NCBI GenBank assembly: GCA_937625935.1
Contig: OW569349.1
Coordinates: forward strand, 1-64,000
From: Tetramitus jugosus
Lineage: Eukaryota; Protista; Heterolobosea
Direction of reading: 5' to 3'
Length of the DNA stretch: 64,000 bases
Part shown: positions 1 to 24,897 of the stretch, piece by piece
Layout: each line of letters starts with the position of its first letter
How positions within the stretch are numbered: the stretch's first letter is position 1
Position numbers and translations under genes: made by a program
The notes under the pieces: generated by a model
Told to the model about the DNA's origin: nothing
Database searches by the model: none
Seen by the model: the letters and a program-made list of their open reading frames with translations, nothing else

Positions 1-821
1 CCAACCCAAACCCAAACCCAAACCCAAACCCAAACCCAACCCCAAACCCAAACCCAAACCCAAACCCACCAACCCAAACCCCAAACCCACCCAAACCCAA
101 ACCCAACCCCAAACCCAAACCCAAACCCAAACCCAAACCCAAACCCAAACCCAAACCCAAACCCAAACCCAAACCCAAACCCAAACCCAAACCCAAACCC
201 AAACCCAAACCCAAACCCAAACCCAAACCCAAACCCAAACCCAAACCCAAACCCAAACCCAAACCCAAACCCAAACCCAAACCCAAACCCAAACCCAAAC
301 CCAAACCCAAACCCAAACCCAAACCCAAACCCAAACCCAAACCCAAACCCAAACCCAAACCCAAACCCAAACCCAAACCCAAACCCAAACCCAAACCCAA
401 ACCCAAACCCAAACCCAAACCCAAACCCAAACCCAAACCCAAACCCAAACCCAAACCCAAACCCAAACCCAAACCCAAACCCAAACCCAAACCCAAACCC
501 AAACCCAAACCCAAACCCAAACCCAAACCCAAACCCAAACCCAAACCCAAACCCAAACCCAAACCCAAACCCAAACCCAAACCCAAACCCAAACCCAAAC
601 CCAAACCCAAACCCAAACCCAAACCCAAACCCAAACCCAAACCCAAACCCAAACCCAAACCCAAACCCAAACCCAAACCCAAACCCAAACCCAAACCCAA
701 ACCCAAACCCAAACCCAAACCCAAACCCAAACCCAAACCCAAACCCAAACCCAAACCCAAACCCAAACCCAAACCCAAACCCAAACCCAAACCCAAACCC
801 AAACCCAAACCCAAACCCAAA
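1..821. repeat. Telomeric repeat (CCCAAA)n, i.e. TTTGGG on the G-strand
   Basis: Near-perfect hexamer array from base 1 with a few variant units in the first ~115 nt; C-rich strand at the 5' end, as expected for a left chromosome end. Confidence 0.97.
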
Positions 822-5928: not shown

Positions 5929-7095
5929 TCACTCTTCCTGTAACTTTTCTCTTGACTTGTCGACCATTTTTTGAGCAACTACATCATAAGGCATCATAAG
6001 GATATTGATCCAAGTAATTAGAGAAAATAGTGAGTGCTTGCTTATAATCCCTTCAAGTGAAAGAAAGCCCTAGAGTACTCGAACCAAGTATCATTTTCTT
6101 TTGCGACATCCTGTGACAAATCCTGGGTCCATTCATCTGTGTTTCTGGATTCTCCCAGTTCATAGATGGACAGATCATTCGATGTCTCTATAGGACGTAA
6201 GTAGAAGAAATCTTTCATGGTTTGATAAACATCGTGAGTCACCATAATTCTTGTACCCCAAGTCTCATTCAAATGACATGCAGTGTGGGATTCAGTTGCT
6301 GCTCGCCCAACCACTGTGAATATTTTGGTTGATTCAGAGCCGATGTTTCCATAGAATGATGGACCAGAACTCAATCCGATTTGAATGTCCAAAAGTGGTA
6401 AACCTTTCAATCTCCAAATCTCTTGCAAACCTAGAGCAGCTCTCTGACAGCCAAGAGCAGTTTTTACCGCTCTGATTCGGTGGTCTGATTGAGCTATTAA
6501 GGTGTTCCAAGCGATGACGGCATGGGAGTGTGTGTGAGACACCAACTGAGCATTTGATTCTCTCACTTTATCCTTGGGCCAATTGAAGTAATTTGATAGT
6601 CTCAGCCAGTGCTGACAACCTCTTCAATGGAGCCATTAAACAGAAAGATGCCACAAGAGATATTATAACTCCCAGTAGTAGCAATACAAATGTTAGGCCA
6701 ACTAGGATTCCAACATCAATTTTGAAATCTCTAAAGAAGAGATCTCTCGGTAGAGCTTGCAATATGAGCCAATCCAAACCGTACTGATCTTTTAGCTCCC
6801 CAATGTTAAGCAGAAAATATCTTTGTTGAAACTCAAATATTCCATAAGCTGTTGATCCCATCTTCTCAGTTGGTGGCAGAATTTTGACCTGGAATAGCTC
6901 AGCATTTTCTTCATGAGTTCATTTTCACCAGTGCTTCCATCCAACCTCTTAATGGTCGAACCATCATTGGTGTAAACCAAAAACTTAGGATCGCTCGTGC
7001 TAATCAAGTGGCCGGTTGAACGCTCAATAATAACAATTTCGCTCGACCATTCAATCGATTTCTGATTCAAGAATAGTGAGATAGCTTCTGTTGAT
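5929..7095 (-). pseudogene. Receptor-type adenylate/guanylate cyclase fragment (extracellular sensor, TM, HAMP-like, class III cyclase)
   Basis: IGLSSGPSFYGNIGS..FTVVGRA cyclase motif; TM helix followed by PLKRLS; frameshifts, an internal deletion, 5' truncation and a 10-bp tandem duplication at 5982-6001. Confidence 0.8.
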
Positions 7096-7284: not shown

Positions 7285-8670
7285 TCAAATTATAGTATCA
7301 TAGTAGAATAAGAAATTAGATTCTTCTATTGGACAGTCTTGCTGCTCTGTTAGTGAATTCATAGCTTGTCGTAACATGTTGACATCAACACTATCATCCA
7401 CATTTGTCTGTGTGATACCTTCCAGCTCACGAGCTGCATTGGCTGCATCCTCAAATTTCGTTCTATTTCCTATATTACATGCTCTCAGAATCCATTCATA
7501 GAGGTGTTTTGATATCTTGTTACTTTCTTCAGGATGTGTCTCACAAATACAAGTAACACATTCTGCCATCACTTTTCCTAATGCAAATATATCTACTCTA
7601 AAAGATGTGCTGCGCGACCGTTTATCACGATACTTCTCAGTTTGCCACATTCCTTTATCTCCCACATGAGCTAATCCTCCCAAATCTATCAACCGTACCG
7701 ATATATTTTCTCCATTCATAGTAAAAGCAATATTATCTGGTTTTATGTCACCGTGTACTGATCTATGATATGAATGCAGATGGTGCACACACGATACTGC
7801 TCCATGTACAATAGAAACTATACTGTACAGTGACATCTGTTCTTCTCTTTTCTGAATTTTTCTCAACAAGTTTCCCAAAGTGTCACCACAATAATTGAGA
7901 ACAATAAAGAATCTGGGTTTAAATCTAAGTTCCTCATCATAGCAAATCCAATATGCATCTATAATTGCATTATAATGATTATTGGGACGATATGTAAAAT
8001 TAAAAACCTTCCATTCCTTAAAGAAATTATCAAATGGGTCCGTTTGATCAATTTTGAAAGGGTCTAAAGTATGAACTAACTCCTTTTCTACAACAAGCAG
8101 ATTGTGAACCTCTTCTAGAAAGTGTTGAAATATATCACCAACACTTCGTTCAACAGTGTCCGCTTTCTTGATATAAAATTCTTTTCTGGCATAAACCGTA
8201 TTGGGATCACCCTTCTTTTTTACTAGTTGTACTCTACCAGCACCTCCAGATGATACATTATCGTTCACAGGCCCAACACTAACATAATTATCATCACCTC
8301 TTGGTTGTATCAACTCATTATAAATATTCTGCTTGTTACATATCTTGATAACCCTATTCAGGAGATTAACTATGTCTTTTTTCATGTTTTCATTGATTTT
8401 TTGCAACATAACGAGCTCAATCACCACCTTATTCATGCTCTGATTCGAGTAGATTTTATTTCGTTCGAGTTCAATAGGAACCTTGATTGGGATTTTTCTG
8501 TCAACTATTACTTGAGTAAGATGATCAATTATCCAAAAAATAGCGCTGTTATGGGTATCATCATAGGTGATTAGTTGAAAGCCAAACCTGTTGTCCCAGA
8601 TTGTAGATGAACGATATTCGTCAATCTCTTTTAGATTGAACTTAATTTCGAGTGCGCGAATGTCGTTCAT
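7285..8670 (-). CDS. Divergent non-RD Ser/Thr protein kinase with unrecognised N-terminal domain (paralog of 20886-22229)
   Basis: SSGGAGRV, YARKEF, FLEE, HGDIKPDN, IDLGG, DIFALG; intact and intronless; first plausible ATG at 8670 (MNDIRALE). Confidence 0.85.
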   Translation of the reverse strand: MNDIRALEIKFNLKEIDEYRSSTIWDNRFGFQLITYDDTHNSAIFWIIDHLTQVIVDRKIPIKVPIELERNKIYSNQSMNKVVIELVMLQKINENMKKDIVNLLNRVIKICNKQNIYNELIQPRGDDNYVSVGPVNDNVSSGGAGRVQLVKKKGDPNTVYARKEFYIKKADTVERSVGDIFQHFLEEVHNLLVVEKELVHTLDPFKIDQTDPFDNFFKEWKVFNFTYRPNNHYNAIIDAYWICYDEELRFKPRFFIVLNYCGDTLGNLLRKIQKREEQMSLYSIVSIVHGAVSCVHHLHSYHRSVHGDIKPDNIAFTMNGENISVRLIDLGGLAHVGDKGMWQTEKYRDKRSRSTSFRVDIFALGKVMAECVTCICETHPEESNKISKHLYEWILRACNIGNRTKFEDAANAARELEGITQTNVDDSVDVNMLRQAMNSLTEQQDCPIEESNFLFYYDTII

Positions 8671-8962
8671 GTTGTGTTTTTTTCTGATGATTAGGATTCG
8701 AACCGAATAAAAATCAGCCAAAGGACTTTTCGGTTTCACCCCACAATCTCCGCCTCCAATTTTCATTTTTCCGTTTGGCGTTGGTTGCAACAATGTTGGA
8801 GATACGAAACGGTCGCTCTTCAACTTATCGGACATTTGGACATATCTCCGTGGTGCTGGATGCTCCACCGCTGCGAAAAACGCCGTCAAGTTTTTTTAAA
8901 CCAAGAAAGCAAAAACAAACTACTTTCAGCAATCGTTATTTCAGGACCCAAGAAGACATTTC

Positions 8963-11506
8963 ATGACTATTGACAATGCAGAAACAGACCAATTTTAACC
9001 CAAGTGAGTGATTCAAGACTCAACTATTGGAGAGAAGACTTGGATTGCACCAGAACAAGATCAAGAGGATGAAGACGATACCAACAGTGATGACAATCAT
9101 GATGAAAATAAGAATGAGTCATCATCTTCTGCGAGCTCCAACGGTTGCAAATCGTGCTAAAACCAAGGGAGAAACAAAGAATAGAACTAGCCGGAGTTTC
9201 TCAACGGGCACGACGAGTGCAGGGCGCAAATGGTTCTCCAAACAATTCGTTTCCAGTGGAGACGAGGGCAGTGAAGCATCGGACCGGTCAAGTGAAGCAT
9301 CGGACCGGTCACACATTAGTGTTGATCAGGATGATGATAGCACTGGAGCAACAGTGTCTTCTTCGACGACTCCTACCTTCAATGCTACTATTAGTTCCTT
9401 GGTCACACGGCGTCCGTCTTCTACTTCTCAAGAACCCTTAGGAAACAGTGACAACAGTGATGATGCATTCTCTGCATCCGCACCCATCAATGTCGACAAT
9501 GTAGATAAGAAGGAAGTGTTACTCCTGTTCCTTCTTCAACATGTTTGTCAACAGTTCACTCCTGATACAACCTATTTCAAGAGCATGTGCACTCAATTGT
9601 TAGAGTGTGGCTATCTGTCTGATTCTCGATCTGGATCACAATTGTCTAAAGTCTGTGTGCAAGGACTTTATGCTTGATGTTATTTCAAATTGGCCAGCCT
9701 TTTCCGAAGCGGCTCCACAAGGTGAGATTACATAAGGAGCCGCCTCGAAATCAAAGCTCCGGAGATCGGAATCTGTTGGTTCCTTCCTCTCTGGTCTCGG
9801 AAGAGACATGGAAATGTCAAGAAGTGGAAATCTACTCGTGTCATCAACAGTGCTTCCATTCTTTGATTTCATGTTTTACTTAACTTCTCGATTCAAGCAA
9901 GATTGGGGCAGCAAGGCTAAGCTAGGAAAGGGAGCCATTGGTTCTGTATTTCGGTCACGTCATCGCATCGATGGTTATGAATATGCCATCAAGAGAATCA
10001 AGTTCTGTTTCCGAAATAAGCTCGAACTTGAGCAAACATACGCAAAGGTTATTCGTGAGGTGAAGTTGTTGGCAAGCTTGGATCATCCGAATATCGTGCG
10101 ATACAATAAAGCATGGTTCGAACCTAGTTGGGAAGATACTGACTATGGCGAGCCAGAAAACAGCGATGACGATGAAGAGGATGACTTTGATTCAGAGAAA
10201 GTGGATGATTTCGAATACAACATCAACGATGGAAGCACTGTCAATAGTGGAAGCAGTGGATTTGCTAATATAGGTGTTGATGCAAATATCAAGAGGGCCA
10301 ATGACGATTGTGCGAATAATGTTCAGTTTAGTTTTGATGAAGAGGCTGACCCTGCTTCTCCCTTCACCCCGAGCATGCCGCTCAATTCAGATAACGTCAA
10401 GTTTGAATGTTCAAGTGATGACGATTCTGTAATTAGTCTTGTTCAACTCCCCGAAGAGCCACACCCATACGACAAGTATCAATCATCATTTATTGCTCCT
10501 TCCCCACAGGATATGAGCTACCTAGAATATGCCATCAAACAGAAGCAACAAGGAACAGCAACCAGACAACCAATAGTTCCTCACCGCTCCATAACTGAAA
10601 AGGTGACTAATTCCCCAGCTGTTGTTGACAATTCAGTTCAGCAAGCAGTCAAGAATCTATTGGCCGAAATGTTCAACGAGAAGAAGAACAAGTTCGAAAT
10701 GTTTTTATATATTCAATGCAACTGTGTCAACAGAATACGTTGGAGATTTACATGTGGAATCAAAATCGTGTCCAACAATGCGTTGTAGATTATGGTCAAT
10801 GCATGAACTTTTTCAAGCAAATTGCCGAGGGTGTTGCCTACATTCACAGCAAGGAGCTTATGCATCGAGATCTCAAGCCAAAAAATGTATTTATTACCAA
10901 TGATAACATTTTCAAGATTGGAGACTTTGGCTTGGCTAAATCAGTGAGAGACAACCTTGTTCACACAAAGTTCAACAAACATGGCACAGAACATGGTGAC
11001 AAACAAATTGTTCAACGGTCTCAGAGTCCAATTGGATCAGATTTATCGGAGCACACATGCTTCACCAGAACAATATGCCACATCCATGTATAATGATAAG
11101 GCGGATGTGTTCACCCAGTCTGGGTGTCATTCTTTTTGAGATGTTGCATCCATTTGCTACAAAATCTGAGAGCTCACATATTGACTGGTCTACGGTCAGG
11201 CAAGATCCCAGATTCTAAGTAAGAGAAATATCCTGAGGAGATGGAGCTTGTGAAGAGGTGTATCGATTCAGCTCCAATGTCACGTCCAACAGCGAGAGAA
11301 GTCCTCACCATAACAAAGGGCATCCTAAGCAGAAGAGAAACGTGAATGGACAAAAGTCATACGCGCATCTCGACAGCAGTGTGAACATCACTCACATTGC
11401 CCAAACGAACGACGAAGTTGTCACTACGAAACCAGTGACCAACGACTTGGATGTTCGAATGTTATTACAACAAAAGGATGATGAGATTATGCAACTTAGA
11501 GCATGA
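8963..11506 (+). pseudogene. eIF2-alpha kinase (HRI/EIF2AK1-like), degraded
   Basis: HRI-like LLLFLLQHVC helical segment; LGKGAIGSV, YAIKRI, acidic kinase insert, HRDLKPKN, DFGLAK, ASPEQ; C-terminal coiled coil; several stops and frameshifts, and the activation-loop GT is deleted. Confidence 0.85.
9270..9311 (+). repeat. Perfect 21-bp tandem duplication AGTGAAGCATCGGACCGGTCA x2
   Basis: Read directly from the sequence; gives SEASDRS x2 in translation. Confidence 0.95.
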
Positions 11507-11507
11507 T

Positions 11508-12197
11508 TTATTCAATACAAACATCAGTATCTTGCAACCGGTCAGTCACAACCAATGGAGGTGGTGCAATCTTTTCACACAACCTCTGGATCAACGCTCC
11601 TTCATAGCTGGTGATGGGCAGTGACGAGATACAGCTTGAGTGGCTCATGTCAAAACATACAAGTTTTTCAGTGGCCATGTAAACACCATACTGAATTCTA
11701 CCCAATCTCAGGTAGGTACTCAGCTTGCAGGATGTTTCTGGCACAATGCAAGTGAAAGAAGTGGTGCCGTGTTCTTCCAAAAACTGCTGTCCCGCACGAA
11801 TTTCCCTGATGTCCGTGCAGAGAAGACTCACAGTCTCCTGTGTCTCCACTTCCAACTGCATTTTTGCGTAAGTAACAAAGTGCACAACCCTGTGGGGATA
11901 ACGATCAAGTAGTGTGAGGAGCCTGGGACACGCGCTTCAATTGGACTTGAACAATCCATTGTTATGGGTGCACCGTTTCCTAACAACATAATAAAGAAAA
12001 GAGGTCAGATACTTCAATCGTTGTATGTCATTCAATACAACCAAACCAAATTTTAAGATGTCCACAACATCTTCAAGATTTTTCCCCGCCAGCAAGCATG
12101 ATACTCCGCTAAATTCCCTAACGGCGAGACATAGGATGGCAATCTTTCTTTCATTGAAAGACAAGGGTAAGCGAGGAGCCATTGTAATCACACCCAT
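11508..12197 (-). pseudogene. Uncharacterised protein, split in two ORFs (possible transposon cargo)
   Basis: Adjacent same-strand ORFs 11937-12197 and 11508-11885 with protein-like composition; no family recognised. Confidence 0.35.
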
Positions 12198-12451
12198 CGA
12201 GTCTGGAGTATCTTCCCTTTCAAATCGAAATGGCTCTCACGTCAGTTGTTGTTGAATTGGATGATGGAACGAGAAAGACATTTCAATGCATTTTGCGGAG
12301 AAATAGGTTCAATTTTTTCATTGCACTTGTTTTTTCCTCAAGTGCGAGTAGGAAAATCCCACGAATCAGCGATGTGGGAGTTTTACACAAATAAATTGTT
12401 GTATTCAAAAAAGTTTATAGCTTGGAAATAGAAGAATCGAGTAACCTACCT

Positions 12452-14858
12452 ATGACAATCAACGACCAACTCCTACAGGAAGGCATTTTTGGTCCTGTCT
12501 ATTCTACAAATGGTCAAATCTACGATATTACCAGTATCATGACTCGGAGAAGCCAATTTCCTTCGGAAACTAGAGAATTTCGGCAGTATGCAAAGAGGTT
12601 CTTGCAAGAGATAGACTCTTCATGGTCAGTGACCGGTGGAAGATACTACGTTTCATTGCGGGGGTATTGAGAGTGGCCTGTAAATGTCGTTTATTCTCAC
12701 TACTGGATGGATTTGCAGATTATTTTGAATCGAGCCATACTCCTAATGTTGCCACCGTCGCTAGATACTCCTCATTAGATCCCATTGATATTAGTAACAT
12801 ATTTTCGACAATAGAGACAGTGGGGTCGAGTTCCGGTGTGGGTATCCATAACATATTGCCCAATCGCCGATCAGAAACTTCTAGATTAAATCGACTTAGA
12901 AGAAAAATTGTTGTCGCTCTTGTGGATATTTGCAAGCCCTATCAATCCCGAAACATGCAAGAATATCCTATTCAACAGGCTATTCTGGATATATTAATAA
13001 TGTTCCTCAGTGGAAATACAGCATCTATCAGATCAAATGATTTAGTGACTGGTATTATCAATGCCCTGTGTACTAATTATGAAAACAGAGTCCTATCTAT
13101 TCGTTTGAAGGAGATCGACAATCAATTGAAAACAGTGGAAAGATTCCAAAGTTCCTGTGGAAACAAAAAGTCATACGTGTCAACAGTTCGAAAAAGTAAT
13201 GCGCTTTCATGATATTATCCCAAGCATGCTATCCAATAGCTTTTCGATGAACGAGGACGGAACCATTGCCATTAAGTTGAAGAAGTATTCTTGGCTTTTC
13301 AGTTGCGATACAAAACGAACGATGCCGTTTTCATCAAAGGAATTCCGAAAGGATAAAACTTTGGCTTGCTTGTTCCCACTATTTCTTGGAAACGCAAGAC
13401 CCTCCTTTTATATGTTCACGATTATTGCATACATGGAATTAACAGAAACCCAAAATAACATGCAGTGGTTGAATCGATACTTGTTCGAAAACTACTTTGA
13501 TGCGTTCAAGAAATACTATTTGTTGGTACAACGATGTGATGGAACTCGCGAACTAGTGTTGTTCGATCTGTTCTTATGTTCAGATTACAAAGAACTGGCA
13601 GCGTTCTTTGGGGAGCTCACGAAATCATGTCTTGGGAATCGATTTGGACAATAATCTTATTGGTCGCATCAAAACTCTCAATGACTACCCTACCTCAGCA
13701 TCTAAAACGTATGGGCCTGATCGGGTAGTCTTTGACATAACACATTGTTGCTCAGCAATTGGGAAAAGCTTGCGAGATCAGATTGTACATGATGCGATAG
13801 CAACAGACAAGTACCAATTTGTTCAACGTTTAAGGGACTCTTCAGTATATCAGCAATACCTGCGAACTGGAGATGCTTATAGTTGCGAGATCGTAGATTA
13901 TCAGTCATTTTTCAGGATATGCGAGGAGTATAACTACTCGTACAGTGTGTCAAACATTTTTGAGTCGGCAAATATCTTGTGTTCATTATTGAGTGAACGT
14001 ACTTCAACTGTACTGCCAACAGTGTTTCCAACCCTCATTATGGTTCAACAACTGCTCGATAGATTAGGCATTAACTTCGATGTTTTGTCTGAAAAAACAG
14101 CGACAAAGAGAATCATGACTCCATGCTACGCTGCTTCCTTAGTTCTGTTGATATGGCCAAAAATTGAATCAATGATTAAGAGTAATGATTGTGTATCAAA
14201 ACTGGCTATGCGCAAATGGATCGAAGCAATGAAAAGTCATTGCCCAACTCAAGATCAAGTTTCAAAAGTGAAGTACTGGGCTTCAGTTGCATTTGATGAT
14301 TGGTCTTTCTTCAAAAAGAGGGCATATCGTATGTTATCCAAGCATATCACAAACACTTTCATCGATGGTGTCAATAGCGGGTTGCTGCCATGGAAAATGA
14401 ATACAGAAGGAATAGAACGTCTTAACTTTATGACGAGTAATACCAAAACAAATCGCCGCACTCTTGACGATACAACGTTAGTTCTCTTTTTGAATGGTAC
14501 AGAAGAATTTCAAGATTTAGTTTTGGATGAAGACAATGAAATATCGGATATTCATCTGGGACCACATTACCTACTCCAGGTGTTGTCTAAATTTGATGTT
14601 CGATGTGAAGCACACAAGAACTACGATAGAACTCATAGTGAGTCTCTGACAACGACAAGAGTCAAGAGGCTAAGTCAGAGATTGGAAAAGAATAATGTAT
14701 CACAGTGGTCGTTGTTTGATCAGGGTATAGTTGAACAACTAAATTCTCAAGTTTCTAATCTCCAACATGGCATTAGACCAATTCGAGATGAACAGATGGA
14801 GAATACTTATCAGGTTGAATCAGACAGAGCTGACCTTGTCGAGAATAGTTGGGCATAG
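12452..14858 (+). pseudogene. Large (~800 aa) uncharacterised protein, frameshifted three times (possible transposon cargo)
   Basis: Four consecutively overlapping + strand ORFs (12422, 12622, 13157, 13608); no obvious introns; no family recognised. Confidence 0.55.
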
Positions 14859-14923
14859 TTAATTTATTTTTTTTGTATTGTTTTCTCGTGTTTTTTAAGC
14901 TAACGCTTTCACCAGCCTTGATG

Positions 14924-15650
14924 TTACAGTAGTATTGGTCGTCCATGGCAATCCTTAATGAAGAGCCGAAACTTCAACCGCAATACCAAATCTCCATTCA
15001 TACCATTGTGAAAATAAATATATAGTGGAGCACGGGAAGTACAATTAGTTCCATCCTTCCAGGTGCGCAGAGGTAATTCTGTCCAAAACAAGAGCGAAAC
15101 ATTTGATAGTTGGATGACTCTCTGTCGTTCAATGTCCGATCGAACTATTTTCCTTTGTAAAATAGCTCGAGGCAAATGTCCAAACAAGTGATCAAACATT
15201 TGCTTCGTCATCGGTACAGTGCTAGTGGTGACAAAATCGTCATAGGGATGAGCTTTCCTCATTGTGGATATCATTTGAATGATCGTTGTTCGCAATTGAA
15301 ATTTGAGTTCAAAAGCCAAAAATTCATCCACCTTTGGAATAGGATTTCGTTCAATAATTAACTCCTCTTGGTGTGTTCGCAAGCGAACGATAGCATCTTC
15401 GAAACTTACTTGTACCAGGTCTCTGAAGAAACTGTCTCTTTCGTCGTTGGTGTTCAAATCATAGTTCCTTTCAGTCATCTGCTTGTATTTTTCATAAACA
15501 CTGATGACGGAGACATCGTGACTTTCCCACTGCATTTGCTGGTTTTCACAAAGAGGAAAGCGCGTCATCAACGTTCCAATACTGGGATCAAGCTCGTGTA
15601 ACATAGTTGTGTTCTTTTACAGCTCCACCTCTCCAATCAAAGCCATTCAT
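14924..15650 (-). pseudogene. Uncharacterised protein, probable frameshift near the start
   Basis: 226-aa ORF without ATG start, overlapping an upstream MNGFDWRGG frame starting at 15650. Confidence 0.45.
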
Positions 15651-15829
15651 GTTGTGTCGTTGTTTTGCTTGGATTCCTTTATTTTTGAAAGAGGGACCCT
15701 CTATTTTTCGAATGCTGCACGGACTTTCAAAATGAATTGAAGAGAAAAGCAAAATTGTCGGGTCATTCGTCGGCAAATAGAACAAAATTTTGAGTAATGG
15801 GCACAAAATTTTTTTCAAGGAAAATTTTA

Positions 15830-16708: not shown

Positions 16709-17871
16709 CTAACAATTCAAAGAAATAAAACATTCTTGAGTTCACACACTGCATTCTACTTTTCCTTCACGCAAGCGAACAATCCACTCTCACAACTCTG
16801 ACCTTTTCCTCAACTTGTTGACCTCCCTCTTTGTCAGGTGGTATTGCTTGTTCGACCTTGCAGTTTTCAATTTCCAAAGATCGCTCCAAAATTGACAATT
16901 TCGTGTCGCCTTGCTACGGATGAATCTGTAAGAATCGACTGTAGTTTCTGTAAAGTTAACTGACGGAGACTGAGGCAAAAAATCAAAAGTGTAACCTCAA
17001 AGGCAAGAATTTTTATTCGGGGAGGGGTGCATCGTGTGATATTACAGAAAATCGGTTACAATCGAGTGACTCAGCTTTGTGTCCATTCGCTTTTCGACTA
17101 TTGATCATGGGTAATTGCGCACTGCTTTTCCGTGTGTGTATTGGGAGAGTAGTGAGAGTATATGATGAGCTCTATAGATATGATATTAGGATTAATGCGG
17201 TTAATACAAGCTGTCATCAATGTGCGTTGATCTGTTAGGGAAACTCAGTGGTTTGTTGATAATAGATGAACTGAGATCTCAGTGTGAATTGAACAAATAG
17301 CAAAATGTAAATACCCAAGATATGATTTTGAAGAAAATGTATTGAGTGTTGATCAATAGTTTTTACCCTATATAGGACATTGTACATCGACCTCCATTCG
17401 TAGAGGTTGGAGTGTATTGCAAAATACCCCATATGCCATTACAATGTTGAAAGTTATGGACAGATAATTTCGCGGCAAATGAACACTCTTCATTCAACAT
17501 ATATAAACACTCTTTATGCGTACAGATGGTGTAATAATTATCTGGAATAAAAGATTAGCACTGTGAGAACTTGTATCATCATCAATGATACCATTTGTCC
17601 ACGTTGATTGTCCGTATGACCGCTATGCTACTTGTCCGATCATCCTGAGGACACATAAATTAAAAGAGGATGAACAATATCGACGCACTTTCAGATGGCA
17701 CATAGAATCTGCTGGATTGCCAAGGACTTTCCGCGATACAACACGCAACGCTCCAAAAAAGAAGAGAAGTAGCACAACGCAACGCAACCTCACAACGCAA
17801 TGCTGTAATATAAATATATGAATTACTTGTGTCAACAAACATAAGAGAACTAAAACAAAGAACAACTAACA

Positions 17872-18381
17872 ATGGGTAGATGGGAAGCACGTGGTTCACC
17901 AGAAGTCACCTCAGAGTTCAATTATAAAGGAATGCGCATGAGACGTGATTCACAGAAAAATATTGTCACGATTGAATTACTGGATGGTTCTTACAAGTCT
18001 TACCGTCAACGTGGTAGACGTATTGTTAACAGGGGACTCTGGAAAGATGCTTGGGATGAGCACCGTCATCATGAAAAGGGTTCATTCAAGTGGAGATCTC
18101 TTGATGGCATTGTCATTCCATTCAATATCAACGATGACAATATTGTGTTTGTTTTCAAGGTTGTACTCGATGATATTTGTACTATTGCAGGCGTACATGA
18201 GTTGACTTTCCATCAAGTTATGCAATCAGTACAATACCTTGGACAGAACAATGTGATCACTGTCTCCTTCTCCAGTGGCTCTCCTTCTATCACTATAGGT
18301 GAATCAGAGTTCCAGAGAGCTATGGGCTATGCCAACAATGAAAACAGTACCAAAGAGGCATGTACAATTGGTGCTCATTGA
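17872..18381 (+). CDS. Hypothetical 169-aa orphan protein
   Basis: Intact ATG-to-stop ORF with an A/C-rich leader and clustered ACAACGCAA motifs upstream. Confidence 0.6.
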   Translation: MGRWEARGSPEVTSEFNYKGMRMRRDSQKNIVTIELLDGSYKSYRQRGRRIVNRGLWKDAWDEHRHHEKGSFKWRSLDGIVIPFNINDDNIVFVFKVVLDDICTIAGVHELTFHQVMQSVQYLGQNNVITVSFSSGSPSITIGESEFQRAMGYANNENSTKEACTIGAH

Positions 18382-18462
18382 ACGAGAAGATGTTTGTATG
18401 TGATTAGTAAACGCGACTTAACGCATAACGCAGATTATATATTGTAACCATTCTACATCATT

Positions 18463-19079
18463 ATGTCCAAAAACAAAAAGCTGACAATATCGTGTTTTTC
18501 AGGACAGTGCCTGATGACATCAGTATTATTGCCAATGCGCTCTTACTCCTCCGTTTTCATCAATAATGACAGACTGTTGGTGGAAATAGGCAACATCTTC
18601 GGGATGTTTAGAATGCTCTTCCACATACTCTTCTTCTTCTTGTTCGTCGCCTTCTCCTATACTATACTGGACGAAGGACCCACAAGCCTCAACAAAGCAG
18701 GCAAGAATAGCAGATCATGTGCCGCACCGAGCAACACAATGCCCAAATACATCCTAAAGTAATAGATTCTGAAAATCTCTGATTGGGCAAAGTTCAAGAC
18801 AATAACACCAACAAGCTTGGTTGCTGTGATGCCACTCACAACACTGCTACCCATGTTCACAAGAGCATCTTCTGCTCTCTCCTTGTGTGATCCAGTTGCG
18901 GACAAGAAGCTCTTGGTTATGTGGACACAGAACTCGACAGATATGCCAATACTCATCACGAGATTCACGACTGAAAGAGCATTTAGATAGATTCCCCATA
19001 TTGCCATCAATGCCATCAAATGAATGTTAATCATCATGAGACACACGAGAATATAGATTGAACTGATTGGTGATGTCAA
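18463..19079 (-). pseudogene. NPC1: Niemann-Pick C1 C-terminal fragment (last TM helices), 5'-truncated
   Basis: [59 protein letters not shown]; all upstream coding sequence is missing; 3' boundary approximate. Confidence 0.9.
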
Positions 19080-19362
19080 TTACAGCAAGTTATGCGTACT
19101 ATCCCTTGCCCTTAATAATATAGTCACTATCTATTCGTGCTTGTTGAGAAAATGCTTCATGATAATAAATAAATGAACTTCTATGCAACAAGGATGGAGC
19201 AGAGATAGGCATGATGTGGTGAGCATCGAAGAGATGATAGAATGCTCTGCAAAGGCTCCATGCAATCTATAGAATTTATAAATGTAAGTCGTACAATTGA
19301 TTTGTAATTTGTAGGATAAGAAATGAGACTAGTGGCTGCCACGATATTACTTTAAATTCATT

Positions 19363-20688
19363 TCATAAGGCGTTCTTTGCACTTAGCTCAATCGTTACCG
19401 GTTCGCCATAAGATCTCTCAATCGTGAGTACATCTCCTATTTCGAAAGGTTGTTCTTCCTCGAGAGGTCTTCCAAGAGATTTTTCGTCTACTTGTCCCAT
19501 TTTCTTTAAATATATCCGTCCCAATGGTATATGACCTGTATTCCCTGACTTGACCGATACATTCAATCCATTTAATTTGAATATGATTGTAATGTCCTTA
19601 GATATATTCACGAAATTAAGTCCTATTATACTGTTTCCTCGTGCCATCGGGTCCTTTTTCATCTCGCATGCATATTTACACACAATAGTGTTCTTAACTA
19701 ACGGAAATGTCACAGATGAATAAACACTGATCTTTGTAGTATTCTTCGTATTGATTTGAGATGTTTCCTCAATGTTGTTCATTACTTGATCGAAAAATTC
19801 CAATAGATCGGTGTCGGTGCTATGCTGCTCGTCATTCAAAAACAAAAAAGGGCTATTGTTCCCACCTTTCATTGGTTCCTCAACCAAATCCAACAATAAA
19901 GGTGTATCGACTCTGTTCATCTCATCAAATCTCTTCTCCTTTTTATAGGTGAAGCGTGAAGTCACATTCTTAATACTGGTATTGATTTTGTCATGGACGT
20001 ACACTTCACTCATATCTTTCTTTTTCTTCTTTACTTGGTATATCTTGTATTTCATTTCCAAGAAGAATGACACTTCATGTTGTACTGTTTCTACCGGTTT
20101 TGAATACGCACCAATGTCGCAGGATGGCATACTTTGATCTTGAAACAGACTTTTTGATCCATCAGAATGATTACTCGATTCCTCCCTTGCTCTCTTGTTT
20201 TGCCTCGTAGTATGCACAATATCATCTCTTATATGAAATCCATCTATACATGTTCGGCTCTGTTGAGTATTGACCAATTCTATCTGATGAGTAGTTTGAA
20301 ATGGTAGTACAGTCGGAACCATTGCTTTGGGCTGATAATCAAGATCTGAACTTGTACTTAAATTACTCAGATTTGTGTACATATTATGGTTTGAAACTTG
20401 AATCACTGCCTGATCACCGGATGAACTTGCATGCGAACCTGTTTGCTGTAAACTAGGTGTGACGTTTGACTGTCGCTTCTTATTTTTCAACTGGGATGGC
20501 TGTCCTGACTTTCTTCTTTCTTCTTCCCTTTGGTTGATAAAGCATTTATGTGTAAAGCAACGATAGCCTTTGTGTACTGTACAGTATTGTTGATATTTTC
20601 CCTTCTCACACTCTTTGCAGTGATGGTTGTTACCATCAAAGTGGTCTGCGCGATTTGCTGAACATTCAGGATTGTTGCATCTTATCAT
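19363..20688 (-). CDS. Cys/His-rich Zn-finger + low-complexity linker + putative degenerate FHA-like domain
   Basis: N-terminal C-x4-C..HHC-x2-C..C-x2-H-x4-C-x2-H-x-C; C-terminal FPLVKNTIVCK..IGLNFVNISK..FEIGDVLTI resembles FHA strand order (by eye). ORF intact. Confidence 0.6.
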   Translation of the reverse strand: MIRCNNPECSANRADHFDGNNHHCKECEKGKYQQYCTVHKGYRCFTHKCFINQREEERRKSGQPSQLKNKKRQSNVTPSLQQTGSHASSSGDQAVIQVSNHNMYTNLSNLSTSSDLDYQPKAMVPTVLPFQTTHQIELVNTQQSRTCIDGFHIRDDIVHTTRQNKRAREESSNHSDGSKSLFQDQSMPSCDIGAYSKPVETVQHEVSFFLEMKYKIYQVKKKKKDMSEVYVHDKINTSIKNVTSRFTYKKEKRFDEMNRVDTPLLLDLVEEPMKGGNNSPFLFLNDEQHSTDTDLLEFFDQVMNNIEETSQINTKNTTKISVYSSVTFPLVKNTIVCKYACEMKKDPMARGNSIIGLNFVNISKDITIIFKLNGLNVSVKSGNTGHIPLGRIYLKKMGQVDEKSLGRPLEEEQPFEIGDVLTIERSYGEPVTIELSAKNAL

Positions 20689-20757
20689 CTTCGTCTTGTT
20701 TCAAAGTTTTCAAGTTGGAAAAAAATGTTGTAAACTACAATGTGGGTCGGAGTTTTT

Positions 20758-20775
20758 TTGCGTTGTACAACGCAA
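20758..20775. promoter_or_regulatory. Perfect 18-bp palindrome TTGCGTTGTACAACGCAA in a bidirectional promoter
   Basis: Self-complementary; lies between divergent ATGs at 20688 and 20886; the half-site recurs at 17773-17800 and 22983-23031. Confidence 0.6.
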
Positions 20776-20885
20776 CCTTTTTTGTCGAGTCGTCGAAAAT
20801 AAATAACGTCAAAGACGAAGTTCGTCTTTTGTGACATCGATTTTTTCGAAAATCAAAAAAATATTGTGATACCATCATCAGTCGA

Positions 20886-22229
20886 ATGAATTGTAACAAA
20901 CGATATGTTTGTACCAACTTGGGACTATTACAACAAGGTACAAATACATTTACACGAGATGGTCCTTCGTTTATGCAATTTCCAATAATTACATTCAATG
21001 ATGTTCATTTGCCTACTAAGGAAACGAATATTCTATCTCGTGTTATGGATGAACTGGCACAAGCTATTAAGAAAACAGATATTCCATTTGTGCAAGTTGT
21101 CAAAGAAGAACAACCAGATATAACGGTCATTCATGTTGTCTTATCTGAAAAGGTCTCTTACAAAGTACGGGACTATATCCGTATTCTGACAACTACTATC
21201 ATCAAGAAACACAATAGAGCACAGACTTATGCTAAAGTGATTCATCCGCGAAACAATGATAACTATAGTAGCATTGATTATATATCTTCTGGTGGAGCTG
21301 CGTCTGTAGAAAAAGTATACAGAAACGATGACCCGAATACTATTTACGCACGCAAAGAATTTATAAATAAGGATAAATCGAAGTATGACCCATCCAGCAA
21401 GCTATTTCGGAATTTCCTAGAAGAGACACAAAATCTGCTTGAGCACACTTTCGAAGGTCATCATGACAAAGTTCATCTGGTTCCAATAGTTGATGCATAT
21501 TGGACTTGCCGTGATGAAAACCTTGTATTCAGACCTCGTTTTTTTATTGTTCTTCAATATTACGATGAAACTCTTGGAAATTTATTGAGAAGTATTAAAC
21601 GCGGAGAGAAACGCAAATCACTTCGTGATATGGCTACTATTGTGTTATCACTGACTAGATGTGTATGGGTTCTTCACAGATCTGGTCATTCAGCACACAG
21701 TGACATAAAACCCGATAACTGTGCTGTTCGTGAAGATCTCACAGTTTGTTTGCTTGATGTCGGTGGCTTGGTTCCTCATGGAAACAGACCTAGATGGACT
21801 ACTGAAAGGTATTGTGATCCAGATATAACTATTACTGGAGCTACTTCTGACACAGACAAATTCGCGTTGGGTCTTGTGATGCGAGATTGTATTCAAGTTG
21901 TTTGTGAACAATTTCCTGATGAAAAAATCCCCAAAAGTCTATCTGAATGGACACTAAAAGCTTGTCATGTAGGTAACAGAGATAGATTTAAGAGCCCGGA
22001 TGAAATGTATTTTGCGTTGGAAAGTATATTGAAATCTTGGGACGAATTGATAGTTGATGAATCAAACATCCTTTTCATTGACAATCTACCAGAAGATACC
22101 AGTGTGTTAATATCAAATCAAGCGAATAATGAGGGAGATGAACCTATGTTGGCCTTAGGAAGAGGTGATGATTCAAGTTGGGAGAATATACATACAGACG
22201 AAATTATGTCATCATCCAACTCCCAATGA
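20886..22229 (+). CDS. Divergent non-RD Ser/Thr protein kinase (paralog of 7285-8670)
   Basis: SSGGAASV, YARKEF, FLEE, HSDIKPDN, LDVGG, DKFALG; intact and intronless. Confidence 0.85.
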   Translation: MNCNKRYVCTNLGLLQQGTNTFTRDGPSFMQFPIITFNDVHLPTKETNILSRVMDELAQAIKKTDIPFVQVVKEEQPDITVIHVVLSEKVSYKVRDYIRILTTTIIKKHNRAQTYAKVIHPRNNDNYSSIDYISSGGAASVEKVYRNDDPNTIYARKEFINKDKSKYDPSSKLFRNFLEETQNLLEHTFEGHHDKVHLVPIVDAYWTCRDENLVFRPRFFIVLQYYDETLGNLLRSIKRGEKRKSLRDMATIVLSLTRCVWVLHRSGHSAHSDIKPDNCAVREDLTVCLLDVGGLVPHGNRPRWTTERYCDPDITITGATSDTDKFALGLVMRDCIQVVCEQFPDEKIPKSLSEWTLKACHVGNRDRFKSPDEMYFALESILKSWDELIVDESNILFIDNLPEDTSVLISNQANNEGDEPMLALGRGDDSSWENIHTDEIMSSSNSQ

Positions 22230-22396
22230 AACTTACAAGAATAGACTATTGCATATTACAGGTGAACTTAGTAATTAAGAAAATGAATATTCCACTTATA
22301 CAACTTGGTATTGAAGAGCAAGAATCTATACAATATAACATGATTGTTGTTGTGTTTGTAAATGAAATTTATACTAATTAGTTGACAATGTTTTAT

Positions 22397-22942
22397 TCAA
22401 CGAATAGCAGGAACACCACTTGTGGCATCATACAATCTTCCTCGATTCTTGCAATTGACAGTGCTACAGTAACATATCTCGAAGAACGAGATTGATCCAT
22501 TCACGATATTAGAATTGTATTTGTGACTCATTCTTGACGAATGATACTGTGCTACTACATAATTGCTTCTTCTGTGAGACACTTTGGTTATGGAAGAGAA
22601 GTTAAAATCCACATAAGATAGAGTAATATGGTCAGTAGGATACCAGAGCATAGTTTGATGACATTCAATGCATCGAGGAGGTGAGTCAGGGCGATGTGAT
22701 TCAGGTGTCATTAGTATACTATCATTGCTTATGACCTCGTTTGCAGTAATTATATTTTCTCTTGTCAAATCATCAATTATTCCTGTCAAGTCAGGTTTGA
22801 AGAAGTAAATGCACTCTTGGACAGGGATAGTAAACTGAGAGAAAATCTTATTTCTAACACTATTCAATGTTTCGCTTCGATCTATAGTGATACCTCCAAT
22901 CGAACCATGACCCACCAATAAGACATGCACGCTTATGGACAT
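22397..22942 (-). CDS. Putative ubiquitin-like (beta-grasp) domain + Zn-ribbon protein
   Basis: ISVHVLL..IGGITIDRSETLNSVRNKI..YFF..II...E pattern typical of Ubl folds; CIEC...CSTVNC Cys pairs. Confidence 0.55.
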   Translation of the reverse strand: MSISVHVLLVGHGSIGGITIDRSETLNSVRNKIFSQFTIPVQECIYFFKPDLTGIIDDLTRENIITANEVISNDSILMTPESHRPDSPPRCIECHQTMLWYPTDHITLSYVDFNFSSITKVSHRRSNYVVAQYHSSRMSHKYNSNIVNGSISFFEICYCSTVNCKNRGRLYDATSGVPAIR

Positions 22943-23114
22943 TTTAGCTTTATTTTAAATATTCAAATTAAAACCGGTGTTTTTGCGTTGTGCTTGTTTA
23001 TTACATTATTAGAACATTGCGTTGCGTTGTGTTACCCCATTCCATTTTGGAACGTTGCGTTACTTACAAAAATCAACTAATCCATAGCATTGAAACAAAA
23101 CAACTTAACAGTCA

Positions 23115-23696
23115 ATGGGTAAGCAAGTAGCAGTCGCTCCAGACGTTTCAGGAGCTATTAGAGAATTCGGCACTGTTGTAAATTATACAACTAGACAGGG
23201 GTCAGAAGAGCTTGTAACTGCTAAAGAACTACAAGCAGAGCTTAATAATGGTAGCAAATCATTATTTCAGGATCTCTTCACTGGTAAAGAAATGATAGAT
23301 GCACATAAGGAGGGCCAGTGTTTCTTTATCCCTAGAGTAACAAAGGTAGAAAGCCAAGTTATGTCAACAATGGACGCTTATAGTAGTGCAAAGGTTAGTG
23401 GATGGTCCTTTGGTTTGGAATGCGCTGATTTTGTCCTTGGGGTTAAAGCACATAAATCATCTGCTTCAATTGGAATTAGAGGAGTATGCAAAAAAGGAGT
23501 TCTCTTTAGTGTTAAAAGCAGATGCATGTTCTGTGGCAAAGATGAAGACTATAATATTGATGATACCCTTCTTGAGCAATTTGCCCTCACTAAAGGTCAA
23601 GTTGGAGGGAATTTGATGCAGGCAGAAACTTATGATATTGCTGCTCTCATAGCCAAGGCTAAAGATGAGATCAAAGCTGAGATGGTAACAAAGTGA
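23115..23696 (+). CDS. 193-aa protein, tentative gasdermin-like pore-forming fold (N-terminally short)
   Basis: Intact ORF; CFFIPRVTKV...alternating Ser/Gly-rich hairpin...GVLFSVKSRCM resembles the second half of microbial gasdermins (by-eye comparison only). Confidence 0.4.
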   Translation: MGKQVAVAPDVSGAIREFGTVVNYTTRQGSEELVTAKELQAELNNGSKSLFQDLFTGKEMIDAHKEGQCFFIPRVTKVESQVMSTMDAYSSAKVSGWSFGLECADFVLGVKAHKSSASIGIRGVCKKGVLFSVKSRCMFCGKDEDYNIDDTLLEQFALTKGQVGGNLMQAETYDIAALIAKAKDEIKAEMVTK

Positions 23697-23879
23697 TTCT
23701 AGAAGTGTTGATTATAAATAAATGGTGTTTGGGAACTGTATTTACAATTCTGATACTTATGTCTGTAAGTTGCTCTAATCTAGTCGTTTAATTGTGACTA
23801 TTGAGGTAATAACATGTATATGGTGAGTACGAACTATGGCAATGTGACGACAAATCAGATCCTGCGAATCCTCAATTAG

Positions 23880-24897
23880 TCGATGCCCGAAACAGTTCTG
23901 ATTTGGTCATTCGAGACTTTCATAAGCGCAGAAAGAAGATTCCCTCCTTCTCATTCTTTGAAATTGCAGTCATGACACAATAGATCAAACAGTTAAAAAA
24001 TGGACTTCTATTTTTTGATGAGTTCGTGCAATCTGATGTTGTTCGAGTTCTAGTGCTTCGAAATGCCAGTGCCCAACTGGGAGTACTTAAGAGGAGGATG
24101 ACAATTATGTTTGTTAACATTCAATTCAGTTCCACAGATGATCTATCCCCAAATGTTGTTGCTAATATGTTGCAAATCATGTTCACTTCGTTGTCTCACA
24201 TTGTCACAACAGAAGGAGGTGTGATTGACAAGTATTTATCAGAAGGTTTCATGTGTTTATTCAATGCTCCATTGGATAATCATGAAGTTCGATCCATCCA
24301 AGCATCACTTCGTATGATCCAAAGAATTGAAGAATTGAATGATAACTGGACGAAAGACGGTCTTCCAACACTCTCAATCAATATTGGAGTGAATACCGAT
24401 GAATGTTATGTGGGAAATGTTGGAAGTCGAAAGAGAGTCAATTATACTGCATTAGGTGATGCAGTGAACGTTGCAAGTCGATTGGTACCTCTCAACATTC
24501 GATATGATTCATCAATCATTATTGGACCTAAAACACGAGAAACAGCACAACATTTGTTTGTCTGTAGATGGATTGCTTGCCTCCAGGTCAAGGGGAAAAC
24601 TCAACCAAGTATGTACATTGTATTTTGTTCACCACTTTCGATTAACTTCTCACACGTGTTTAAGTTGATGTGTATCAAGTAGTGATCGAGAGAGAGAAAG
24701 CTTCAGATCAACAGAAACAAATGGAAGCTCTCGCTTCGCATGTGAAGCAATCTATTGAATTAAATGATCTAGCTTCAGCTCACTCATTGGTTCTCTCTTT
24801 GTTGACAAGGTATCCGAATGACAAAGCATTGATTGAGTTGCAACAACGATTGGAATCTCCAAATTTTAGTGTTTCCTTGGAATTGAGCAGTAAATGA
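23880..24897 (+). pseudogene. Adenylate/guanylate cyclase 3' fragment (HAMP remnant + class III cyclase), intron 24609-24665
   Basis: GGVIDKYL, IGVNT..VGNVGSRKRVNYTALGDAVNVASRL, VKGK; in-frame stop upstream of the domain; 5' part missing. Confidence 0.8.

Follow-up and report, generated by a model that had tools for sequence, protein, structure and literature searches.

Within the stretch of DNA analysed here, positions 1 to 64,000 of contig C6 (OW569349.1) from the heterolobosean Tetramitus jugosus (assembly GCA_937625935.1, 26.35 Mb in 56 contigs), which we refer to as the window, five genes named E, A, B, C and D lie 17.7-23.7 kb from the contig start and its telomere. We read them as a lineage-specific, co-regulated and kinase-centred subtelomeric gene cluster, a reading that in our judgement stands about an even chance of being right. 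Clusters of unrelated but co-regulated genes are seldom found in protists, and to our knowledge almost nothing has been established about gene regulation or conflict systems of heterolobosean amoebae. The locus offers a small and tractable unit in this respect, comprising a 9-bp promoter motif, an 18-bp palindrome, an apparently active kinase, judged from its residues, and an octapeptide found in two otherwise unrelated proteins. If the five proteins act together, they would illustrate how subtelomeres give rise to new, lineage-specific signalling modules; otherwise, the locus would be a clean example of the birth and decay of orphan genes at chromosome ends.

Gene arrangement and promoter motif

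The original prediction, made by inspection of the letters, had described four intact and intronless genes arranged as two head-to-head pairs with a shared promoter motif. A, B, C and D are indeed four intact open reading frames (ORFs) forming the pairs A/B and C/D, with divergent spacers of 197 bp (A/B) and 172 bp (C/D) and a convergent spacer of 167 bp between B and C, and A, B and C are collinear with RNA contigs. At a G+C content of 37%, the ORF lengths of A-D are far above chance expectation. A, C and D are single-copy in the genome (G000, with other contigs named C2, C31, C38, C45 and so on), and B has one diverged paralogue, B2. The fifth gene, E, was recognized by the motif. The features of the cluster are as follows:

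17743-17800, minus strand: promoter of gene E with motif copies, TTGCGTTG at 17775, 17780 and 17793 (overlapping or adjacent) and a degenerate copy at about 17743
17872-18381, plus strand: gene E, an orphan ORF of 169 aa, fifth and motif-defined member
19363-20688, minus strand: gene A, an intact ORF of 441 aa
20137-20214, minus strand: segment of A in common with D, residues 159-184, HTTRQ...GSKSLFQD
20758-20775, no strand: 18-bp palindrome TTGCGTTGTACAACGCAA in the divergent A/B promoter
20886-22229, plus strand: gene B, the kinase, an intact ORF of 447 aa
22397-22942, minus strand: gene C, an orphan of 181 aa, intact ORF
22983-23063, plus strand: divergent C/D promoter, TTGCGTTG at 22983, 23017 and 23022 and the variant TTGCGTTAC at 23055
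23115-23696, plus strand: gene D, an orphan of 193 aa, intact, with a conserved core (SSAKVSGWSFGLEC, RCMFCGK)
23184-23273, plus strand: segment of D in common with A, residues 24-53, YTTRQ...GSKSLFQD

The shared promoter motif was confirmed by its distribution over the genome. The 9-bp sequence TTGCGTTGT has 251 copies in 26.35 Mb, compared to 338 for the reversed control, and since it is rarer than this control, it is not a general promoter word. Eight copies of TTGCGTTGT/ACAACGCAA fall into the window and six of them between 17774 and 23030, which places 6 of the 251 genomic copies in 5.3 kb, where about 0.05 would be expected. All six are intergenic and distributed over three promoters, with two in the A/B spacer, two or three in the C/D spacer and two or three located 70-100 bp upstream of E. 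The 8-mer TTGCGTTG occurs 11 times in the window against an expectation of 1.9, a number reached by none of 100 shuffles, and direct pairs of this 8-mer no more than 40 bp apart occur at no other place in the genome. The two copies in the A/B spacer form the perfect palindrome TTGCGTTGTACAACGCAA, which is unique in the genome.

Moreover, the motif is found in a related organism. On a 2,988-bp JGI contig (L007), the 200 bp upstream of a homologue of D hold TTGCGTTGT together with a run of GCGTTG repeats, and the motif upstream of D-family genes has been kept across species, with different flanking sequence. The promoter of this homologue (1988-2130) is 86% identical to G000:C38:8233-8363, a motif promoter located 8.2 kb from another telomere and followed, in this genome, by an unlike small ORF (124 aa when counted from its ATG); tblastn with A-E gave no match at the C38 locus. 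The homology ends at the boundary between promoter and gene, which suggests a shuffling of promoters or genes between subtelomeres. Apart from C6 and C38, a looser pattern of paired motifs has a single further match, on C31 (262896-262925), where a close GCGTTGT pair is situated just upstream of a 532-aa ORF that may be another member of the regulon. Taken together, the motif is a genuine cis-element of what is probably a very small regulon, represented at this locus by three promoters and five genes.

Compact, intronless and divergent orphan ORFs with a common upstream motif might also be the relic of integrated foreign DNA, from a giant virus or a large mobile element, that has kept its private promoter motif, and the G+C content of the cluster (0.35-0.38) is slightly below that of its surroundings (about 0.40-0.43). 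Nevertheless, we consider such an origin improbable. There is no viral hallmark gene among the cluster proteins, terminal repeats are absent, and the codon adaptation of the cluster genes (0.69-0.71) equals that of the neighbouring host genes, with a slightly lower G+C content at third codon positions. In a motif scan of IMG/VR, the palindrome was absent and a 15-mer gave only single, chance-level matches, while scans of JGI metagenomes and IMG/VR with A and with a profile of B and B2 recovered only the organism's own contig, so that A and B are without relatives in IMG/VR. In addition, a diverged copy of the kinase, B2, is found in the subtelomere of the host. The proposal that the cassette is mobile likewise found no support, as A-D are single-copy (apart from the one paralogue of B, at 42-44% identity), convincing terminal inverted repeats are absent and codon use is host-like.

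Transcription and strain variation

Transcription was assessed on 17800-23760 with the contigs of four soil metatranscriptomes, each from another study, which give neither expression level nor strand. Sequence nearly identical to the window is present in the soil metatranscriptomes of several studies. B and C are covered by one RNA contig of 2,152-2,160 nt (20816/20826 to 22975/22977), which was also found in a JGI sample (L008/L031), A is covered by a contig reaching from 19049 to 20693-20699, and small contigs cover 17863-18431 with E. The RNA support for D is a single contig of 208 nt from one run. Both divergent promoters are uncovered, the ends of the RNA contigs coincide with gene boundaries, and, judging by these ends, transcripts would start between a few bases and about 90 bp downstream of the motifs. 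Introns are not seen in A, B and C, whose RNA contigs are collinear over the whole genes with zero joints. Because of this collinearity and the uncovered promoters, A, B and C are transcribed and intronless, in a pattern that looks like transcription units rather than DNA carry-over. All five genes are real ORFs and transcribed, D only faintly, which for A-D supports the original prediction on this point.

The same contigs reveal differences between the soil strain and the genome. In A we found six single-nucleotide polymorphisms (SNPs), all of them non-synonymous (R59I, E297K, T314P, G385D, P388Q and R391Q), three of which (G385D, P388Q and R391Q) fall in one loop. In addition, an insertion of about 48 nt near 20324 (20320-20324) affects a low-complexity region around residue 122; based on the contig offsets, we infer that it is an in-frame length polymorphism. 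The ratio of six out of six is by itself non-significant (p ~0.19), and the concentration of the variants in A is mildly significant (p ~0.03 by our own calculation). A is either diversifying or weakly constrained, with its reading frame retained. The coding sequences of B and C show no SNP relative to the soil strain.

Kinase B, the orphan proteins and the peptide common to A and D

The assignment of B as a non-RD kinase proved correct. B scores 35.2 bits with the Pfam model Pkinase (PF00069; cutoff 31.7, E 1.2e-8), and the catalytic residues K157, E179/E180, H271-S-D273, N278 and D291-V-G293 are all conserved with B2, which makes B, as predicted from its residues, a catalytically complete and divergent eukaryotic-type protein kinase. 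It carries HSD instead of HRD, so that the HRD arginine is absent. The presence of all catalytic residues together with HSD/HGD in B and B2 is reminiscent of the non-RD immune kinases of the IRAK/Pelle/RLK group; unlike these, B has no receptor, death, LRR or TIR domain, and its best PDB sequence match is the MAP kinase p38-gamma (E 3e-5). B and B2 are 42-44% identical and share an N-terminal domain of about 125 aa that is of no recognized kind. A relic just behind the stop codon of B matches about 40 residues of this domain (residues 40-79; 37.5% identity, E 0.003), and this third copy suggests a past tandem duplication followed by decay. We rejected the idea that C is an antisense artefact of the relic, which ends by about 22381.

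A second link within the cluster is a segment of 26-30 residues, [HY]TTRQ...GSKSLFQD, that A (residues 159-184) and D (residues 24-53) share. The octapeptide GSKSLFQD is identical in both proteins, although five of its eight codons differ and both serines switch codon family. Its length of eight exceeds the longest common word in 20,000 shuffles (seven), the local alignment of A and D has a z of 5.0 that was reached by none of 400 shuffles, and hhalign assigns the segment an E of 0.016. A back-translated pattern of the octapeptide matches only A and D in the genome, with no control matches, and the other pairs among A, C, D and E show no similarity. By eye, the segment of A sits in an S/T-rich linker of low complexity, and the segment may represent a short linear motif. 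We discarded the alternative that D derives, as a truncated paralogue, from the entire C-terminal half of A, since only the 26-30-residue segment is significant.

Combining these elements, a single transcription factor would switch on E, A, B, C and D together. The N-terminal zinc cluster and the basic runs make A a candidate for the DNA-binding member, which would act at the palindrome in the promoter of A itself. The segment common to A and D would be a short linear motif that brings both proteins to one common partner, in the simplest case kinase B, with the S/T-rich segment serving as docking or phospho-acceptor site. Such a circuit might serve in responding to stress or to other organisms, or in telling self from non-self.

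Among the orphan proteins, A contains a Cys/His cluster in its first 49 residues (C4, C9, C24, C27, C36, H39, C44, H47, C49), in addition to the basic runs and a beta-rich C-terminal part. C has a CxxC (91, 94) and a CxCxxxxC (157, 159, 164), and both C and D carry conserved CxxC pairs. None of A, C, D and E has a transmembrane segment. Searches of A, C, D and E, including sub-domains, against Pfam, NCBIfam and PADLOC gave no match even at E up to 10, and PDB sequence searches with the orphans gave no significant one. In a word-based homologue search, A had no relatives, C found only itself and D found one relative; a protein language-model search (Atlas) returned no usable match for A. For A, C and D, relatives beyond close kin were not found.

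A HMMER search of 1.84 billion representatives with a D profile yielded the two halves of the L007 homologue, a fragment on two ENA contigs (L026/L027, 925 and 687 bp) and one spurious repeat protein only. The L007 homologue is collinear with D and split by one frameshift. The L026/L027 homologue is more distant (40-49% identity) and contains internal TAG and TAA stops and a frameshift that are identical in two assemblies; it is likely a pseudogene in another relative. Between D and the L007 homologue, the ratio of non-synonymous to synonymous substitution rates (dN/dS) is 0.1-0.3 with saturated dS. Because of this saturation, the D family appears to be old within the lineage, and the ratio points to purifying selection; such an age also argues against the relic of foreign DNA discussed above. 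An N-myristoylation of D was dismissed because Gly2 is not conserved in the L007 homologue. Upstream of the latter, L007:44-1340 is 73-96% identical to a repeat on C48, C27, C1 and C11, which is probably a transposable element common to both organisms.

The original prediction had gone further and assigned the genes to an immunity, allorecognition or cell-death module, in which B signals to A as a phospho-reader, C is a ubiquitin-like adaptor and D a gasdermin-like pore former. We give this module only a slim chance. In its favour, the nearest neighbours of D in the Atlas search were fungal hypothetical proteins and clusters of Bact_GSDM (PF26164) at 0.93-0.94, with 179-185 of 256 features shared with the nearest clusters and a gasdermin family carried by 7 of 30 matches; B is non-RD; D is near-silent in RNA, as an executor might be; and A varies between strains by six non-synonymous and no synonymous SNPs, three of them in one loop, and by the presumably in-frame insertion. 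However, the query recognition value of D in this search was 1852, which is rated as weak evidence (<2300), and the excess of amino-acid changes in A is non-significant alone, as stated above. D matched no gasdermin (PF04598/PF26164), FHA or ubiquitin model at E up to 10 and no PDB sequence, and the HMMER search led only to its close kin. Gasdermin pore domains comprise roughly 240 aa or more. At 193 aa, D is shorter, and it has a conserved cysteine cluster with CxxC; its likeness to gasdermin systems is confined to the weak language-model similarity, the small size and the lack of transmembrane segments. A neighbouring protease is missing as well, as Pfam, NCBIfam and PADLOC scans of A, B, C, E and the flanks revealed no protease family or other known trigger. 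AlphaFold2 models, made from single sequences with no alignment, were unusable for D and C (predicted local distance difference test scores of 35 and 32). As to the other domain calls, neither the whole of A nor its last 195 aa gave an FHA match (PF00498) with E up to 10, and the ubiquitin-like or zinc-ribbon call for C received no support from Pfam, NCBIfam, PADLOC or PDB sequences, the nearest ubiquitin-like PDB match being a designed ubiquitin variant at a weak E of 1.1.

A gasdermin-like fold of D is perhaps worth keeping as a lead, with a small chance of being correct, and a role in immunity or cell death is speculation, for which the weak language-model likeness of D and the amino-acid-changing variation of A are the only hints. 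The most far-reaching version would be a self-contained heterolobosean conflict module in which the palindromic motif and A make up a private transcription circuit, A also bears a rapidly diversifying sensor surface, the kinase is non-RD, D is a small, tightly silenced executor whose fold is related to that of gasdermins, and the A/D peptide couples both to the kinase. This is, in our view, slightly less probable still than the module originally proposed; if true, it would represent kinase-gated cell death or allorecognition in a eukaryote, in a system without a described relative. What stands of the postulated functional link between the genes is the locus-specific motif and the peptide common to A and D; the pathway built on FHA, ubiquitin-like and gasdermin domains received no sequence support.

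Subtelomeric setting and weighing of the cluster

The surroundings of the cluster are marked by duplicated and decayed sequences, of which the following features are relevant:

7285-8889, minus strand: kinase paralogue B2, 534 aa, 12 kb nearer to the telomere than B
18541-19078, minus strand: Patched-like pseudogene fragment, a 97% copy of G000:C45:66002-66534
22214-22330, plus strand: relic of the kinase N-terminal domain just behind the stop codon of B
23928-24895, plus strand: 5'-truncated cyclase of a family of about 720-aa adenylate/guanylate cyclases, right-hand boundary

The cassette had been described as wedged between two truncated genes. Both flanks are truncated copies: on the left, a dead 538-bp fragment shares 97% identity with the 3' part of a Patched-like ORF of C45 that measures at least 676 aa, and on the right, 23928-24895 aligns only with the C-terminal third of the cyclase family at about 70% identity. 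However, as E and its motif lie to the left of the Patched fragment, this fragment is inside the cluster and not at its edge. The transcript of A extends into the fragment, and the abundant RNA contigs found over it carry the variants of the parent gene and depart from the locus precisely at 19078. Left of the cluster, repeats and transposon remains stop at 17032, and a block of 4.75 kb (11000-15750), which includes ORFs that, judged by eye, resemble transposase genes, is 96-97% identical to G000:C2:66518-71585.

This patchwork of a Patched fragment from C45, a truncated cyclase, the C2-like block, a kinase paralogue and a kinase-domain relic is what one would expect if unrelated young orphans had merely come together in a fast-changing subtelomere, with the motif being duplicated promoter DNA or a general condition-specific element and without a common pathway. 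We consider this explanation rather unlikely, though well worth weighing. It would accommodate the motif in front of unrelated ORFs at C38 and perhaps C31, the lack of conserved synteny in L007 and the fact that A and D are the only similar pair among A, C, D and E. It does not account for an octapeptide that A and D retain at the protein level with different codons, for a motif conserved across species upstream of D-family genes with differing flanks, for the lack of coding SNPs in B and C between strains or for the purifying selection on D.

Several points weigh against the co-regulated cluster itself. Since the motif also precedes unrelated genes at C38 and possibly C31, it marks a small regulon rather than the cluster alone, and the similarity of the promoters could partly stem from a local duplication of promoter DNA. 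D is nearly without RNA whereas A, B and C are covered, and the contigs show presence only, not co-expression. As A, C, D and E match no fold or family, the data do not demonstrate a pathway logic. In the L007 homologue of D, the octapeptide has not been retained and the segment is only partly kept (G-T-V-Q-V-F). L007 is also the only homologue of D with context, and it is split by a frameshift and is not beside homologues of C or B, while the L026 homologue has two stop codons and a frameshift. Thus, the conserved neighbourhood sought in relatives was not seen, and its absence in one informative relative weighs against an ancient fixed module.

Compared to known systems, the proposed co-regulated cluster resembles subtelomeric lineage-specific gene clusters of microbial eukaryotes by its position 18-24 kb from the telomere, by the surrounding mosaic of truncated genes, duplicated pieces and remnants of transposons and by genes that are lineage-restricted, one of them fast-changing. 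It differs from subtelomeric contingency or adaptive families in that five different single-copy proteins, rather than a large paralogous family, are combined with a private cis-motif and a peptide common to two of them. The divergent pairs with a motif in the cluster promoters are also known from co-regulated clusters with bidirectional promoters, such as fungal metabolic clusters with a zinc-finger regulator. In line with the latter, the zinc-cluster protein A, whose DNA binding is putative, is encoded inside the cluster and has the palindrome in its own promoter. In contrast to the fungal clusters, recognizable enzyme genes are absent here and the motif is present at one or two other loci.

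Besides, a short ORF with a cyclase domain (6042-6566, minus strand) lies downstream of the kinase paralogue B2, which mirrors the arrangement of B and 24026-24682. An ancient segmental duplication of a kinase plus a cyclase (B2 with 6042-6566, B with 24026-24682) was rejected, as identity between the cyclase domains is only 26% and the non-coding sequence shows no remaining similarity; the mirrored arrangement is probably a coincidence in a cyclase-rich genome. At the very start of the contig, about 820 bp (window positions 1-820) consist purely of (CCCAAA)n and represent a TTTGGG telomere, and C38 begins with the same repeat.

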